Positions 28,340 through 34,870 of a stretch of DNA of 64,000 bases are shown piece by piece. Under the pieces are notes generated by a model that had not been told where the DNA came from, made no database searches, and saw only the letters and a program-made list of their open reading frames with translations. Positions within the stretch are counted from its first letter, which is position 1, and every line of letters begins with the position of its first letter. The DNA is from Paramoeba atlantica. Taxonomy: Eukaryota > Protista > Discosea. A program made the position numbers and the translations under genes. The DNA lies in the NCBI GenBank assembly GCA_977017575.1, contig CDRNVI010000060.1, forward strand, positions 62,001-126,000, read 5' to 3'.

Positions 28340-28837
28340 GAATGCTGAAGACACGAAAGATACACGAAACCACTGAATTGACACTTTGCCACATCCATTC
28401 CTTTCACTTTCATACCGGGCGAGCCGGCAGAGCATCTTCCTGTCGTACGACGACCGTTATCAACGACCATTACAGCGCATTCAACGCCGGTCGTACGCAG
28501 GGATTCGACCACGCCGCGTGGTCAAGGGAGGTCCTGCAGCGCCTGGGGGGGTGAAGGGGGCACTGAACTTCCACTGCGGGGGGGCGTCGTTGAGAGGCTG
28601 CAAGAAGCCTTTCGGCTACACAGCGTCGTTGAGAGGCTCTCCCCGGCGTCCATCCAGCGGGGGCACTCGGCGCGTCTGACGCGCTGCGCGTGGGTGCGAA
28701 GCGGCGGCCCCTCTTCAACGGAAAGATGAGTTTCCGGCCCTAGTGCCGGCCGGAAACGGACATACATAAAAGGCTAAGAGTATGCCTGTTTCTGGGAAAA
28801 GAAAGGATGAGCAACAAGGTACAGGAATTGTATCTTT
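28340..28837 (-). other. SL-headed GC-rich non-coding unit, copy 2 (3' boundary approximate)
   Basis: Begins AAAGATACAATTCCTGTACCTTGTTG (28837-28812); about the first 150 nt align with the unit starting at 29486, including the CC(G/A)GAAAC.GGCA..TG.CCGTTTCCGG hairpin. Confidence 0.55.
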
Positions 28838-28839
28838 TA

Positions 28840-28945
28840 GTATAGTGACCCCAGTTGGAAGATGCTCGAAATGTACTTGTAATTCCCCGCTAAACACATT
28901 TGATGGCATCTTGTTGATGTTCATGCGCTCATTGACGCAGAGATA
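28840..28945 (-). pseudogene. Internal LRR fragment between the two SL-headed units
   Basis: Translates LYLCVN..SNVFSGELQVHFEHLPTGVTIL. Confidence 0.5.
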
Positions 28946-28949
28946 CAGC

Positions 28950-29486
28950 CCTTGATGCGACGGCCGATATCATCGGCACATGACCCGCTCACAACAGACG
29001 TCGCACGAAGGAGAATTCGGCACGGACTCTGTCGGTAGAGGGGGTCCGGGTAACTCGCCCTCTTTTTACGCAGCCGGAGGGGCGTACTGCAACCGACTCG
29101 GCCCCAGTCGGTAGAGGTGGTCCAGGCAACTCACCACCTCTTTACGCAGCCGGTGGGGCGCACTGCAACCGACCGCTGCCTCGCGATAAGACGAGGCAGA
29201 GCCACGCCCAGTGGTCCTCAAGGGAGGCCACCATGGCGCATGGCTCCCCGGGAAGGAAAGGCGTGAAAGGAAGAAAGGCCCGGGAGGGAAGAAAACTCAC
29301 TGAAGGAGTGAGCCGGGGAGGGGTGAAAAGTCGAAAGTACGTCCCCTACTTCCACGACAAAGAGGGACAGTCCCTGCTAGCCGTCAGCCGGAAACGGGCA
29401 TTTAAAGAGAAAATGTGTGCCCGTTTCCGGGAAAAGAAAGGAAGGACTAGCAAAATGTACCAACATGGTGCAGAAACTGTATCTTT
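28950..29486 (-). ncRNA. SL RNA gene-like or SL-headed unit, copy 1: 3' SL exon followed by a GT donor
   Basis: AAAGATACAGTTTCTGCACCATGTTG|GTAC resembles the kinetoplastid SL exon end (..GATACAGTTTCTGTACTATATTG|GTAT). The 5' AACTAAC part of the exon and a canonical Sm site/T-tract are not seen. Confidence 0.45.
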
Positions 29487-32400
29487 TTGATTCATGCAGT
29501 TTACCTGCAGAGATTGATACCTAGAAGATGCATGACTAGCACGCAATCCTTGCACAAAACGAGTTTCTCCTAGGTTTTTAAAACTCTTCACCAGCACGTG
29601 CCCTCACTCCACTGCTCAATGCCGCGATTATTAAAAATTTTGAAACTGCCACTAAGGGCTCTTGTTACCATATGCTGACGACATCGCGAGGCGGTGGTCT
29701 TGTTTCCACCAAAAAGGGAGTTCAGTGCTCGAGTTGAGCTGTTGAGCTTTCCTCTGGCACCTACTTCAATGGCCAGGAGAAAAGTGGCTGGGTTCGACAT
29801 TTTCCGTTGTAGATACATATGTCCATACTTCTGCATCTTCCGTTCGTGTGAGGAGATAAAGTTTTCCTCCCACGGAGATGTCAGTTCTAGTATGAACTCA
29901 GAACCGTTCTTAAGTTGGACCCATCCATCAGGTCGGAGGGACGTTTCTTGCCCGCTCAGCCAGGTTGGCGGATTCTGATGGTGAGCGAGGTCAAAGTGAT
30001 ACTGTGCGGTTTCGGGGGATTGTCGAATAGCATCTGCAAGGGCGTGTAGAATGAGGTTGTGACGGAAGGTATACCGCCCCTGTTGCAGGGCGGCCTTGCA
30101 GCCTGTTAGAACGTGGCGCACAGTTTGTACGTCTTCTGAGCAAATGGGGCATTTACGGTTCGTGTGGTAACTGAGGCCCCAGCGGTGTAAGGCGGATCGG
30201 GTCGGAAGCGGTGTCTGTGTCAGAACAGATGAAGCAAGTCTGGAGAGCGACGTACTTTTAATATTGCACAGAGCAGCAGCGAAGTCTTTCGCGAGGTCGT
30301 CTTCTGTAGCCATGCGAAACCACTGCCCCGCGATTGGTGCTCGACGCTGCACAGCTTCTGAGAGATGTCTTTCGTATTCATGTTCAATGTACTGCCGTGT
30401 CGATGCGTGATTTCCACTGCGGTCGTACAACTCGACGACTGGTCGCACTTGTCCGGAAGAACGTTTGTCGTGTTCACGACGGATGCGATATCTCAGCGCT
30501 TGTTGCACTGCTGGATCACGAGATTTTTTCATCTGTTCAACTGCTGTGCCTGTGCAGAGTAACCAAAGCTTAGACAGGCTGGTGAGAGCCCAGCCGCGTT
30601 CAGAGTACAGAACTTCGCTCGTAGCTGTTTTGGCCATGTTTATCCATTTTCGAATGTGTCTCGTCGCATATTTTTGTAGTCGAAGGATAAAGTTTAGTGT
30701 CATTCCTGGATTGACCGTGAGCACATATCGCAGGCGAGATATGATTACGTTATTATAGGCCCAGAGACGAGCGGGGGTATCTAGGGCACTATTGGATACA
30801 TTGTTCAACCAAAATCGTAGCTGCTTTAGGAGACTTTTGAACAGTACTTTCCCTTGTTGGGTCCCCGGCGCGAGTGTCATACCTAGGAACTGACTTCCTT
30901 TGTCGCAAACGTTGGGAATACTCTCACCGTATGCCAAGATACGGGGTCTGTGGGTCTTATATCCGCCTTCTGCTACAGACATGTGTTGGAGACGACATTT
31001 CGGTACGTTAAGGCGCATGCCTAACCTGGAAAGCATGTTCATCAGGGCGTTCGTCACGTGTTGCATTTTTTCAGCCGAGTTCGTGATGATAGCCAGATCG
31101 TCTGCAAAGGCTTTTAAGAACGACTCTTGGTTGCCCCATTTAATACCATAGCTAGGGAAGCTCGATCGGAGATGTCGTAGAACCACTTCTATGGCGAGAT
31201 TGAATAGTACGGGGGATAGTGTGTCGCCCTGGAGAACACCTCGTTTGACGGGGATGTGTTGGGTCAGCCCTTCCGAACATTTGATCCGGATAGTCGCATC
31301 ATGGTATAGGGAGCGGATGTACGCGATGATTTGAGGTGATACATTTGCCCACGTTAGGACTTGAAAGAGAATGGAGTGTGGGAGAGAACCAAACGCGTTC
31401 TTTAAGTCAAATTGACCAAGGCAGTATTGTCGTTTATGCTGTCGTTGAAAGTCCAATAGTTCACAGAGTGACTGGGTATGCTCGATAGTTCCATTTACGT
31501 TTGGCAAAAATCCTTTTTGTATGGTTGTGTCAATTATTCCTGTCGTCACAGCATGGCTCAAGATTCTGTGGCCAATAATGGAGTGGAGTAACTTACCAAG
31601 GCAGCTCGTAAGACTGATGGGTCTCCAGTTGGACAATTGGTTGGGAGCTCCGCCTTTGTGAATGAGTCGGGTGACGGCCTGTTTCCAATAGGGAGGGCTG
31701 ACCGAATGCTTCAGTACGTCATTGAAGACTTGCGCGATGAACGGGTAGAGCTCTTCGCAGCGTCGAAGAAATGCGTTTCCCACGGTATCGGAGCCTGGGG
31801 CAGCCGAGGGGCGTTTCGAGGAGATTGCCACTGCTATGGTTGGTACGTCGATTGCTTCCCATTCCATTGCATTCTCTAGATCCAGGCCAAGGAGGTTTGT
31901 TGGAGGTAGACTATGATCTTCCGTGTCTGTGCTTAACAATTCTTGGAAAAATGTTTCGATAGCTGCTTGCGAGCAGTCTGGAAAGGTTGCCGGCTGATTT
32001 ACCAGTTGCTCGTTCTTGTCAAGACACTCTCCGGCTGCTGTCCAAGGGTTTCTTTGGAACCTGTCCATCATCCAGCGTTTCTCTCGTTCTTGTTTGACTA
32101 GTTTCGCTTCTTCCGTGTACAGCTTATGCGCTTTGGTCGCTTCTTTTATGTTGCCGATCAAGCGGTCCCTTTCTGAGCGTCCGTGGGTAAAGGAAAGAGT
32201 ACGTTTCAGTTGACGGATGTGTCCTGCTAGTTGCTTCGCAGAGCGGTCATAGCTAAGGGGTCGTGTGGGGCGTTTCGCATGGCCAATTTTGGAGCGCAAT
32301 TTGAACCCTTTGGTGGGGTCGAGTTCCCGTACAACTTCATAAACCGAGACCGCCATGCAAGCTGTCAGTAATTCCGTATGTAGTAGGGCTTCGCTCGGGG

Positions 32401-34373
32401 TTGATGCAGGCTTTAAGTACTTTTTACATCTATCCATGGCCTTCTTTATTGCCAGCTGCCATTGGTCCTGTGAGAGGCTTATCATGACCCGCCCTCCTTC
32501 GATCGTACGCATGGTGCTTAACAAGTATTCAGCCGTCTCGGTGTCTAATATGTTTTCATTTCGAGATCTATTCCTCTGTGAGTTCAGGATCGTGCTGTCA
32601 TTCGGCCCGTGGGTCTGCCGTGGTCCGCCCCGCGGTGGGAGAGTCTGGGTAAGCGTCTGTGTGTTACTTTCAGTTCCGAAGGTTGGCGCTGGTTCCGAGG
32701 TTACGTTGTTCACCGGTGGATGTGCTGGTTGTCGTGGAGACTGATTGATGCGGGTTTCTTCGGAGGCATTTGTGAAGCGTCTTTCGTGGCGCTGATCTCG
32801 TGGTGAACTCCGTGCGGCGCCTATTTTGGTTTCTACCTGTCTTTGGGGCTCAGAAGATGCGGATCTTTCGCTGTGACCAGCAGGTGCTTGTCCGTTTGTC
32901 TCGTTGTTAGACAGATTCCACGAGAAGAGGTTGCGTAGGCTCCAGCGGGTGGGTTCCTGCCGAGCGTCCTGAGGGGGGCTGAGTACTCCCTCCTTACAAC
33001 ATTGGTGTTTGCATTCGGCCTTGTTGCGGCATACGTGCTTGCAGGGCCTGCGCGAGAGTTCTTGTTCTTCCGACGTTGTTATGTGATGCAGATTTCTGTC
33101 TGGCGGTGTCTGAGTGCGTGGGGCGGGTGAGGGAGGGGTGGCAATTACTGTTGTTTCTTCGTTTAGGGATTCAAGTCTTCTAGGGTCGATCTTTACCCCA
33201 ATCTTGCAACACATGTGCTTACATTGTTGCTTGTTTTGGCAAATGTGTTTACATGATCGTCGAGGTGTCGCGCATGTGCTAGACGTTTGTTCATCTCGAA
33301 GCCATGGTGTAGCATCAGGCCTGGCATCAGACTTTTGGATTGCACTATCTGCTCTCTGCATATCTGGGTGAGGTGAGGGGTGGTCCATAGGTTCGGGGTC
33401 AATACTGATCTTGCAACATTGGTGGAGGCATATGCGCTTGTTCAAACATCGATGAGCACACGGTTGAGTACGGCTGGGTCGAGCTTCGTGGTTGGGGGTT
33501 GGTTCGTCCGTTGTACGAGGCAGCGGATGACTTCTGTTTGGTGCGTGGCCACCCGGTTCCTCTGGACGATTGTTGGTGAGCTCGGGTTCCATCCCAACTT
33601 TGCAACACGGGTGGAGACAGGTGCGTTTATTCAAGCAGCGGTGGGCACAAGGTTGTTGCCGCACTGTCCGCGTTCCTTGTCCCGCCGCCTGGTTGGGCTT
33701 CCCGATCAGGAAAGGTTCGCCGTACTCAATCCTAGTTCTCCCAAGAGCCTTTTCCCAAGAGCCTTCATCGTGTACTTCCTTAGTGTGGACGTGGGTTAGG
33801 TCGAACGCCGCAAGTCCCGAGATGTTGTTCCCAGCCAGTTTCTTCTTGATGGTGCGTCCAAGGGTTCCAGGACAAGAGTACTGTTTATCTAGCTGTAGAG
33901 ATGCGTCTGCGTGTGCTGTCGCCCAGCTAGTGTGCCGGAATATCCTGTGTGGCGGTGCAATTTCGCGGAATACGAAATGTTCGCATGCTTCCTCGTTCAT
34001 TACGTCTTGTAAAGTGCATTTTTCTACTAATATACCATCAGACCGCTTTGCTCCTGTTTCAAGGGTTCGTGCTAAGGAAAGTTCCGCTGAAATTTCGGCA
34101 TTGAAGTGCCTCTTCTTGGTTAGAAAACAAGCCGCCGCGTGGATGTCAGGGAAATAGAGCCATGATGTGGAAGTTGAGTGTCTTATTTTTACAGAAATCG
34201 CACTTTTTTGTGTGAAGTTGAAGGTATGCTTGCGTGAAGGTTTTGCGCCAGCAGATCCTCGAGGGAGGTCGCCTTGCGCCTGGGGGGCAGAGGTAGTGGT
34301 GTGGAGTGACATGCCCCTGTAGGGGTGATAACAGTTAGTACAAAAGACAACAAGGTACAGAAACTGTATCTTT
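29461..34373 (-). mobile_element. Full-length RLE non-LTR retrotransposon flanked by 26-nt SL-like direct repeats
   Basis: Repeats at 34348-34373 and 29461-29486 are 24/26 identical; intact ORF between them. Confidence 0.85.
29588..34312 (-). CDS. Single-ORF RLE LINE polyprotein (about 1574 aa from MSLHTTT): 4 Cys/His fingers, RT, CCHC knuckle, restriction-like endonuclease
   Basis: Uninterrupted ORF with NWRPISL, GFLPNVNGTIEH, GVLQGDTLSP, KAFADD, CPIC..RHVLTGC, RYTFRHN, RPDG, LELTSPWEE, RKMQKY. Confidence 0.95.
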   Translation of the reverse strand: MSLHTTTSAPQAQGDLPRGSAGAKPSRKHTFNFTQKSAISVKIRHSTSTSWLYFPDIHAAACFLTKKRHFNAEISAELSLARTLETGAKRSDGILVEKCTLQDVMNEEACEHFVFREIAPPHRIFRHTSWATAHADASLQLDKQYSCPGTLGRTIKKKLAGNNISGLAAFDLTHVHTKEVHDEGSWEKALGRTRIEYGEPFLIGKPNQAAGQGTRTVRQQPCAHRCLNKRTCLHPCCKVGMEPELTNNRPEEPGGHAPNRSHPLPRTTDEPTPNHEARPSRTQPCAHRCLNKRICLHQCCKISIDPEPMDHPSPHPDMQRADSAIQKSDARPDATPWLRDEQTSSTCATPRRSCKHICQNKQQCKHMCCKIGVKIDPRRLESLNEETTVIATPPSPAPRTQTPPDRNLHHITTSEEQELSRRPCKHVCRNKAECKHQCCKEGVLSPPQDARQEPTRWSLRNLFSWNLSNNETNGQAPAGHSERSASSEPQRQVETKIGAARSSPRDQRHERRFTNASEETRINQSPRQPAHPPVNNVTSEPAPTFGTESNTQTLTQTLPPRGGPRQTHGPNDSTILNSQRNRSRNENILDTETAEYLLSTMRTIEGGRVMISLSQDQWQLAIKKAMDRCKKYLKPASTPSEALLHTELLTACMAVSVYEVVRELDPTKGFKLRSKIGHAKRPTRPLSYDRSAKQLAGHIRQLKRTLSFTHGRSERDRLIGNIKEATKAHKLYTEEAKLVKQEREKRWMMDRFQRNPWTAAGECLDKNEQLVNQPATFPDCSQAAIETFFQELLSTDTEDHSLPPTNLLGLDLENAMEWEAIDVPTIAVAISSKRPSAAPGSDTVGNAFLRRCEELYPFIAQVFNDVLKHSVSPPYWKQAVTRLIHKGGAPNQLSNWRPISLTSCLGKLLHSIIGHRILSHAVTTGIIDTTIQKGFLPNVNGTIEHTQSLCELLDFQRQHKRQYCLGQFDLKNAFGSLPHSILFQVLTWANVSPQIIAYIRSLYHDATIRIKCSEGLTQHIPVKRGVLQGDTLSPVLFNLAIEVVLRHLRSSFPSYGIKWGNQESFLKAFADDLAIITNSAEKMQHVTNALMNMLSRLGMRLNVPKCRLQHMSVAEGGYKTHRPRILAYGESIPNVCDKGSQFLGMTLAPGTQQGKVLFKSLLKQLRFWLNNVSNSALDTPARLWAYNNVIISRLRYVLTVNPGMTLNFILRLQKYATRHIRKWINMAKTATSEVLYSERGWALTSLSKLWLLCTGTAVEQMKKSRDPAVQQALRYRIRREHDKRSSGQVRPVVELYDRSGNHASTRQYIEHEYERHLSEAVQRRAPIAGQWFRMATEDDLAKDFAAALCNIKSTSLSRLASSVLTQTPLPTRSALHRWGLSYHTNRKCPICSEDVQTVRHVLTGCKAALQQGRYTFRHNLILHALADAIRQSPETAQYHFDLAHHQNPPTWLSGQETSLRPDGWVQLKNGSEFILELTSPWEENFISSHERKMQKYGHMYLQRKMSNPATFLLAIEVGARGKLNSSTRALNSLFGGNKTTASRCRQHMVTRALSGSFKIFNNRGIEQWSEGTCW

Positions 34374-34445
34374 ATGATCTTTATAATCTTTATAAGTATG
34401 ATTATAAGTATAATCATTATAAATCTTTATAATCTTTATGATCTT

Positions 34446-34819
34446 TATAATCTCTCCAAACTTCGAGGCAATAAAGAAAAATCGACAGTGCCACTCAACG
34501 CATTGTTGGAAACATCCAAACGTTTTACAGATCGTGTATGTTCCCAATGCAATGTCCCACACAATTTTCGACCATACCAAGCAATGACAATAACTTCCCC
34601 CTCGTCATTGCCTACCACTCCATCCCACGCATATGCAGGTGTGGCAGTGCTCGACGACTCATGTGGGCTTTCGACATCGCTAATAAACTTTTCAAGTTCG
34701 TATTCCTGTGGAAGAAATGCGCCCCTTACCTTTGCCGCACGTGACGTTGAGCTCCCGGAAGTGTTTGTGAAATGAGGATGACGGCCAAAAAATGCATAGG
34801 GCAAATTGTACTTATACAA
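34446..34819 (-). pseudogene. 5' half of an LRR gene truncated by the LINE composite
   Basis: RAAKVRGAFLPQEY motif and first LRRs, ending at LPRSLERL where the 9-mer repeats begin. Confidence 0.85.
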
Positions 34820-34870
34820 AATACTTATACGAAGTGAAACATAAAATCTGATGTATTGCTTAAGAATTTG

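Follow-up and report, generated by a model that had tools for sequence, protein, structure and literature searches.

The stretch of DNA analysed here, 64,000 nt of an assembly deposited for Paramoeba atlantica (GCA_977017575.1, contig CDRNVI010000060.1, positions 62,001 to 126,000; hereafter the window), carries on its minus strand a long interspersed nuclear element (LINE) that is bracketed by two direct repeats resembling part of a spliced leader (SL). A sequence-only reading of the window had proposed a new LINE that inserts into SL genes. Our work supports a different view: It is highly probable that the locus is a composite retrotransposon insertion in which the leader heads stem from leader-carrying RNA, and that SL genes are not targeted. 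The LINE would be joined tail-to-head to a 565-bp short interspersed nuclear element (SINE), and the two would have entered a leucine-rich-repeat (LRR) gene as a single composite insertion. In this model, the template RNAs would have borne the leader, most likely gained by trans-splicing, and copying would usually halt, or the template end, at leader base 11. The bracketing repeats would then be the heads of two different elements. The endonuclease does not appear to be aimed at SL genes; among the copies read, the family occupies a variety of sites, one phase of the LRR coding repeat being overrepresented.

The repeats themselves were described correctly in the sequence-only reading. In a motif search of the window, the 26-mer AAAGATACAGTTTCTGTACCTTGTTG was found without mismatch at 34348-34373 (minus strand), ending 35 nt before the ATG at 34312, and its counterpart AAAGATACAGTTTCTGCACCATGTTG at 29461-29486 (minus strand) with two mismatches (24 of 26 positions identical), beginning about 100 nt past the stop codon at 29588-29590; among the leader repeats of the window, only the copy at 29461 continues with GTAC. 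Both the motif search and a reading of the sequence confirmed the similarity of the pair, the two spacings and the GTAC. A third leader-like copy, absent from the earlier description, lies at 28812-28837 (minus strand, two mismatches). None of 100 shuffles of the window contained a leader-like 26-mer.

We have also located the SL gene array of the organism, and its leader agrees with the repeat motif. As read from the SL gene units, the real exon is 38 nt long (AACTTTAACGATAAAGATACAGTTTCTGTACCTTGTTG) and is followed by the intron GTATGAGAAGCTTCG / GTATGAGAAGCTTCGAAC...; the repeats match bases 13-38 of this exon and are thus, as had been proposed, its 3' part. The units are arranged in tandem with a period of 2.56 kb on contigs C97 and C107, and more are present on C74, C11, C24 and C3. 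Each unit has a constant sequence upstream of the exon and contains a 5S rRNA gene on the opposite strand (L071, which is G000:C97:1-10000, and L072 on C107). The presence of 5S rRNA genes in SL arrays is usual for bodonid-type kinetoplastids, and the intron start GUAUGAGAAGCU is the same as in trypanosomatid SL RNAs. Because of these two features, the host of the SL genes is, judging from the make-up of its arrays, a kinetoplastid. The exons are intact in the arrays examined, and the sole insertion examined in the C74 array, a LINE of the apurinic-endonuclease (APE) type, sits in the spacer and not in the exon. At this site (L073:4880-9400, G000:C74), the LINE, which encodes Exo_endo_phos and RVT_1 domains, has expanded the SL unit to 7.3 kb; it is inserted about 330 bp past the SL exon and carries an 8-base leader relic, CCTTGTTG, some 25 bp ahead of its own ATG. 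The SL repeat also encodes a conserved 158-aa open reading frame (ORF) without a match in Pfam. The public runs with this DNA are stored as contigs, none being registered as RNA; the one run that may be RNA gave a match to the leader itself only, and a literature search found no publication containing the exact leader sequence.

The LINE of the window starts with the end of this leader. Its first 28 nt (34348..34375, minus strand; ATAAAGATACAGTTTCTGTACCTTGTTG) are SL bases 11-38 and are identical to the real exon. They are followed by a 5' untranslated region (UTR) of 35 nt (34313..34347, minus strand; TCTTTTGTACTAACTGTTATCACCCCTACAGGGGC) that reads TACTAAC-N15-CAG just ahead of the ATG. The box, the pyrimidine run and the CAG are likely to serve as the trans-splice acceptor for the translated mRNA. 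The branch-point-like box GTACTAACTGT (TACTAAC) is common to at least five related LINE families. The ORF (29588..34312, minus strand) is open; it encodes 1574 aa plus stop from the ATG at 34312, or 1609 aa from an upstream ATG, and is 96-99% identical to the other copies, the copies being 1-4% diverged from each other. The 3' UTR (29487..29587, minus strand) holds the module AATCTC-TGCAG-loop-CTGCA-TGA-ATC-(A)5 with its stem-loop at about 29492-29516, and the LINE terminates in ...CTGCAGTTAAACTGCATGAATATC(A)3-9. It is here, at window positions 29484-29490, that the alignment of the other copies stops. At the opposite end, the alignment of the other copies with that of the window sets in at leader base 11-15, its reach being limited by the query's own flank. 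The LINE 5' UTR occurs ten times in the assembly, in nine cases with at least the last 10 leader bases directly upstream; for the copy on C23, the leader bases were unmatched on that strand.

What lies beyond the 3' end of the LINE differs from locus to locus. The ten 3' ends represent five flank types, and a leader follows only in the pair formed by the window and C51; the remaining four types are unrelated to SL sequence and to one another. Each insertion is present on two contigs (C60/C51, C3/C1, C85/C3, C14/C23 and C16/C29). Four flank types were read on both contigs, with identical flanks and 98-99% identity; for the fifth, C3/C1, the pairing rests on search coordinates, the second contig being a search match with its flank unread. 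These paired contigs seem to be both haplotypes or recent large duplications in the assembly.

In the window, the sequence that follows the LINE is a SINE. This SINE-A copy of about 565 bp (28921..29486, minus strand, delimited by repeat alignment) is placed head-to-tail with the LINE: its leader tail, which has two mutations and lacks the first two bases, stands directly after the A-run of the LINE and passes into the body of the element at the joint TTG|GTACATTTTGCTAG. More than 30 dispersed copies are 87-92% identical to window 29486-28921, and this long-form joint occurs in 63 copies, none of them in the C97 or C107 arrays. Past the TTG, the SINE has only GTA in common with the true SL intron. 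The downstream repeat is therefore not an SL RNA gene: it lacks exon bases 1-12, GTACATTTTGCTAG is not the intron GTATGAGAAGC, and it belongs to a dispersed 565-bp repeat. Nor is it half of a 26-bp target duplication. The upstream repeat has the consensus sequence, and the downstream repeat has two changes, both shared with C51 and fixed in a SINE copy that is 8-10% diverged; this speaks against their having been duplicated at insertion. The idea that the bracketing repeats are a duplicated SL target has to be abandoned, as a SINE starts with the downstream repeat, which continues into something other than the SL intron. The starts of the SINE copies are as uniform as those of the LINE: 17 of about 22 copies read begin with ATAAAGAT, that is at leader base 11, irrespective of the upstream sequence, three begin with ACGATAAAGAT (ACG plus the tail), and in one pair the leader begins at base 3.

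The two elements resemble each other at their 3' ends as well. The SINE ends in ATCTC-TGCGC-CAAAGA-GCGCA-TGA-TAAAC-AA(A) (in the window copy ATCTC-TGCG-loop-GCGCA-TGA), and the LINE in ATCTC-TGCAG(T)-TAA-(A)CTGCA-TGA-ATATC-AAA. This module of ATCTC, stem-loop, TGA and tail is present in three LINE families and two SINE families, the former including the P0001 and P0003 types on the ENA contigs L074 and L075, which have the same leader. The stems differ in sequence but are complementary: in an alignment of eight rows, 92.5% of the cells are paired and two of the five pairs have changed on both sides, a result equalled by 0-1 of 500 shuffles. The shared 3' end makes this a classic LINE/SINE partnership, to which the common 28-nt head is added. 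Since the head and the 3' module (ATCTC-stem-loop-TGA-A-rich tail) are shared, the SINE was probably mobilised by the LINE group.

Three lines of evidence suggest that the heads were acquired from trans-spliced RNA. First, the joint between leader and element behaves like a splice junction in the SINE. In nine copies of the same SINE, the leader is attached directly to CCCTTCCTTTC (short joint TTG|CCCTTCC), and this joint falls exactly after the AG of the GCTAG in the long form. A 3' splice site would produce just such a joint, shifted to the position that follows an AG. The third leader-tailed unit of the window, a non-coding, short-form relative of the SINE (28600..28837, minus strand, with a provisional 3' limit; TTG|CTCATCCTTTC..., aligned with family-B units), is of this short type and belongs to a related family. 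Second, some SINE copies carry a longer or even the full leader, so the template can hold the whole of it. Finally, leader copies are common throughout the genome. The leader core ACAGTTTCTGTACNNTGTTG occurs 884 times in the 45.7-Mb assembly as compared to no occurrence of the reversed control in the same pattern search. Thirty sites, sampled without selection, show the leader joined to a variety of short T-rich 5' UTRs that precede an ATG. Most of these leaders reach back to base 2-3, often directly after a poly(A) run, and partial duplications of the first leader bases are common upstream. Across the whole genome, RNAs that bear a leader are thus habitually turned back into DNA. The tandem array at L001-L004 (G000:C1:8252-26549), which has a period of 5093 bp, carries a full leader at the head of every unit, and there the 35 bases ahead of the leader repeat the 35 bases behind it.

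How far the leader extends depends on the type of copy: copies made by the restriction-like endonuclease (RLE) type of element start at leader base 11, whereas poly(A)-type copies reach base 2-3. The start at base 11 probably reflects a strong stop of reverse transcription. The sequence just upstream of the LINE (34376..34448, minus strand) consists of at least five stuttered copies of ATAAAGAT(C/T), the first eight bases of the element, and variants thereof. Similar local duplications are found upstream of SINE copies and of other SL-headed copies, and we infer that they arose by template jumps at the 5' end of the RNA.

There are several observations that do not fit easily with an origin of the heads by retro-copying of trans-spliced RNA. 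In the LINE family, the leader is joined to the UTR as TTG|AATTAATTTTCATCTTTTGTAC in six copies, as TTG|ATCTTTTGTAC in two, and as TTG|TCTTTTGTAC in the window and C51, and the two shorter joints are not preceded by an AG. No leader-less master copy of the LINE was found in the assembly. Moreover, leader-tailed copies would not obviously regain the same head by ordinary trans-splicing, and a 5' module that is inherited would also account for the constancy of the start at base 11. Finally, occasional landing in leader sequence does happen, since in one case (L054, G000:C23:199178-202736) a SINE has entered the leader that heads another LINE, at about base 11, and is accompanied by a 12-bp duplication, GAGAACTTTGAA. 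Even so, the evidence favours the explanation which the sequence-only reading had mentioned as an alternative, that is a trans-spliced leader that was retro-copied.

The LINE and the SINE lie within an LRR gene. The 5' flank (34449..34830, minus strand) is the start of an LRR gene (...WDGVVGNDEGEV...LDVSNNALSGTVDFSLLPRSLERL) that is broken after LP-x-x-L-x-x-L and to which paralogous LRR genes align at 70-81% identity. On the far side of the SINE, a fragment (28838..28920, minus strand; ...MPSNVFSGELQVHFEHLPTGVTIL) continues the reading frame of this flank (frame INKMPSNVFSGELQVHFEHLPTGV). The order on the minus strand is thus the LRR gene, the ATAAAGAT stutter, the LINE, the SINE, the LRR frame and the second leader-tailed unit. 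Because the LRR frame is unbroken across the block of LINE and SINE, the block represents one insertion site. Both this insertion and that of the second leader-tailed unit follow LP-x-x-L-x-x-L of successive LRR repeats and are therefore in the same phase. Among the SINE insertions read, LRR flanks are seen in 5-6 of 19 rows (about a quarter, haplotig duplicates included) as compared to 1.25% of random positions, mostly with N-x-(F/L)-x-G within 16 codons downstream. At other loci, too, different units are precisely joined tail to head (L069/L070 and the joints between poly(A) and leader). The fusion would therefore be explained most simply by a template switch, in which the reverse transcriptase passes from the 5' end of a first RNA to the 3' end of a second, and a single such event may have been sufficient.

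The fusion might, however, have been built in two steps, the SINE arriving in the LRR gene first and the LINE landing later exactly at the 5' edge of the SINE, since the upstream LRR half-site had remained intact. In favour of this, the SINE is 8-10% diverged from its family and the LINE only 1-4% from its own, and the family has a preference for this phase of the LRR repeat. On the other hand, the divergence of the SINE may reflect different source copies and not age, and the precise joints at other loci fit template switching. We therefore regard the two-step course as possible but rather unlikely.

A second alternative concerns the head itself. It is doubtful, but worth considering, that the 28-nt tail goes back to a single capture from a trans-spliced RNA and has since been inherited as a functional 5' module, serving as an internal start site or as a binding site for the protein of the element. 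This would account for the fact that all copies of several LINE families (43-65% amino acid identity) and of the SINEs have the same first base irrespective of their flank, that the stutter units in the window also start at base 11, and that a leader-less master is missing. Trypanosomatid L1Tc/ingi elements, which offer a possible parallel, are reported to have an internal 5' promoter that is bound by the transcription factors of the SL genes (PMC8190864). A single capture is, however, hard to reconcile with the longer or full leader on some SINE copies, and the joints of both LINE and SINE vary exactly at the end of the leader, which would require repeated precise deletions. Moreover, the 5' region does not match any known ribozyme or RNA family: searching 34100-34500 against Rfam gave no self-cleaving ribozyme or other known RNA at E values up to 10. 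The same database yielded weak chance matches only for 28700-29650, and no match in the whole window at gathering thresholds.

Bolder still is the idea that the leader tail and the 3' stem-loop act together, one at each end, to label RNAs for the R2-like machinery, for instance as a binding or start signal, or, in a stronger version, that the long-form SINE donates the 28-nt mini-exon. The long form contains a hairpin, TGTACC-TTGTT-GGTACA, that resembles the stem at the 5' splice site of SL RNA, and together with the G|GUA junction this hairpin may mimic that splice site. We consider either version quite improbable; if true, it would account for the presence of precisely this truncated head on both LINEs and SINEs.

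Retro-copying of leader-carrying RNA thus remains the explanation that we prefer, and a LINE specific for SL genes or SL sequence, cutting near exon base 11 and duplicating the 3' part of the exon, is very improbable: such insertion is the known mode of CRE, SLACS and CZAR, the 3' end of the LINE does abut leader base 13 of the next unit, and the SINE in the leader head at L054 is the kind of event it predicts, but four of the five independent LINE loci have 3' flanks other than SL, the LINE is preceded by LRR coding sequence and stutter and not by SL bases 1-10, the downstream unit is a SINE and not an SL gene, the repeats differ at 2 of 26 bases as compared to 1-4% among LINE copies, and the true arrays have intact exons, the one insertion examined being the APE-type LINE in the spacer. 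The exons of the real arrays on C97, C107, C74, C11, C24 and C3 are intact, and the window locus is an LRR gene; likewise, a split exon does not flank every copy. With this, the proposals of a new SL-targeting LINE and of an independent origin of such targeting in this lineage both fall, as the element does not target SL genes.

The protein confirms the earlier assignment to an intact, R2-like LINE with an RLE. Its reverse transcriptase (RT) domain (30878..31660, minus strand) matches Pfam RVT_1 with an E value of 2.8e-31 and includes GVLQGDTLSP and FADD. A motif scan placed a CCHC knuckle and the RLE (CPICSEDVQTVRHVLTGC...QGRYTFRHN...RPD...ELTSPWEE) at 29840..30151 (minus strand), the full C-terminal motif being CPIC...H....C...QGRYTFRHN...RPD...ELTSPWEE. 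The zf-RVT family matches this protein with an E value of 1.6e-5, its 25.9 bits lying below the Pfam cut-off of 27.5 bits, and the whole protein gives 3.8e-4, again below the cut-off. In the N-terminal part, the translation shows four Cys/His knuckle repeats of the form C-x-H-x-C-x5-C-x-H-x-CC (32990..33655, minus strand), which do not match any Pfam family and are presumed to be a DNA- or RNA-binding module. Structures of R2 and of L1 ORF2p match the RT with E values around 1e-30, and the part from RT to RLE could be aligned over its entire length, including the endonuclease region, to the R2 of the zebra finch (R2Tg, 9dou; E 8.9e-30, query 2-722). In the ESM Atlas, an R2-type cluster is the second-nearest overall and the nearest with a specific name (score 0.96), and the named proteins recovered by profile searches include R2 and R2-like proteins of arthropods. 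With RVT_1, CCHC and the RHN...RPD...E motif present and no match to Exo_endo_phos, the APE domain, the element is an RLE-type non-long-terminal-repeat retrotransposon of the R2 supergroup.

Its position within this supergroup was addressed by a quick maximum-likelihood tree. There, the LINE falls into a supported clade (SH-aLRT, a Shimodaira-Hasegawa-like approximate likelihood-ratio test, 96) of 26 unnamed protist and metagenome sequences that includes its relatives from this organism or a related one. The R2 of Kalotermes, an arthropod R2-like group, the group bearing Ulp1, and the APE LINEs all fall outside this clade. The tree has no reference from the CRE clade because no named trypanosomatid CRE, SLACS or CZAR protein was among the best 120 matches, although bona fide R2 was returned. 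Two named clades were considered and rejected. The R2 clade proper does not apply since the protein has no Pfam C2H2 or Myb match, the element is not in rDNA, and the Kalotermes R2 is outside the 26-member clade. NeSL does not apply either, as there is no Pfam Peptidase_C48 match, the Ulp1-bearing relative P0017 groups elsewhere, and SL genes are not targeted. A transcript of the prokinetoplastid PhF-6 (P0124, EukProt PhF_6) encodes an RT that is 53% identical to that of the LINE, and the LINE family therefore extends to other early-branching kinetoplastids. The more distant P0003 (43% identical; L075:2800-7900, ENA ERZ24900291 ctg3877l = G000:C2:374596) is a related RLE LINE that starts at leader base 12-13 and has long (TG)n tracts on both sides; it is possibly a microsatellite-specific family.

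CRE1/CRE2, SLACS and CZAR are RLE LINEs of trypanosomatids that are specific for SL genes; they lie inside the exons of the tandemly arrayed SL genes, with the parts of the split exon on either side. The LINE studied here resembles them in its kinetoplastid host, in a CCHC knuckle and RLE located C-terminal to the RT, and in its association with SL sequence. Unlike them, it is found in an LRR gene and at other, scattered sites, and the leader forms the 5' head of the element itself. With R2, it shares the single ORF, the order of N-terminal nucleic-acid-binding knuckles (presumed here), RT, CCHC and RLE, and messy 5' junctions. R2, however, is specific for 28S rDNA, whereas the LINE is outside rDNA, lacks Pfam Myb and C2H2 matches, and forms part of a separate clade in the quick tree. 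As in the stringent LINE/SINE pairs of the eel, UnaL2 and UnaSINE1, the SINE ends in the stem-loop and tail of the LINE, and here the stem covaries; in contrast to the eel pair, the partners also share a 28-nt 5' head made of host SL sequence. Finally, the retrogenes with relic leaders in dinoflagellates (PMC5585692) are DNA copies of trans-spliced RNAs that keep the 5' leader, as do the roughly 880 heads in the present assembly. In our case, the host is a kinetoplastid, and the leader, typically cut to its last 28 bases, heads autonomous LINEs and SINEs. Topic searches of the literature found no description of SL-headed LINEs in kinetoplastids.

Taken together, our analysis removes a false lead: there is no second, independent origin of SL-gene targeting. 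Instead, the data suggest a little-described route by which LINEs and SINEs may obtain their 5' ends in an organism in which every mRNA is trans-spliced. Whole families would combine a head taken from the host SL with recognition through a common 3' stem-loop. The system would thus be a natural record of trans-splice sites, of stops of the reverse transcriptase and of template jumps, and the window illustrates how a family of LRR genes is eroded by retroelements.

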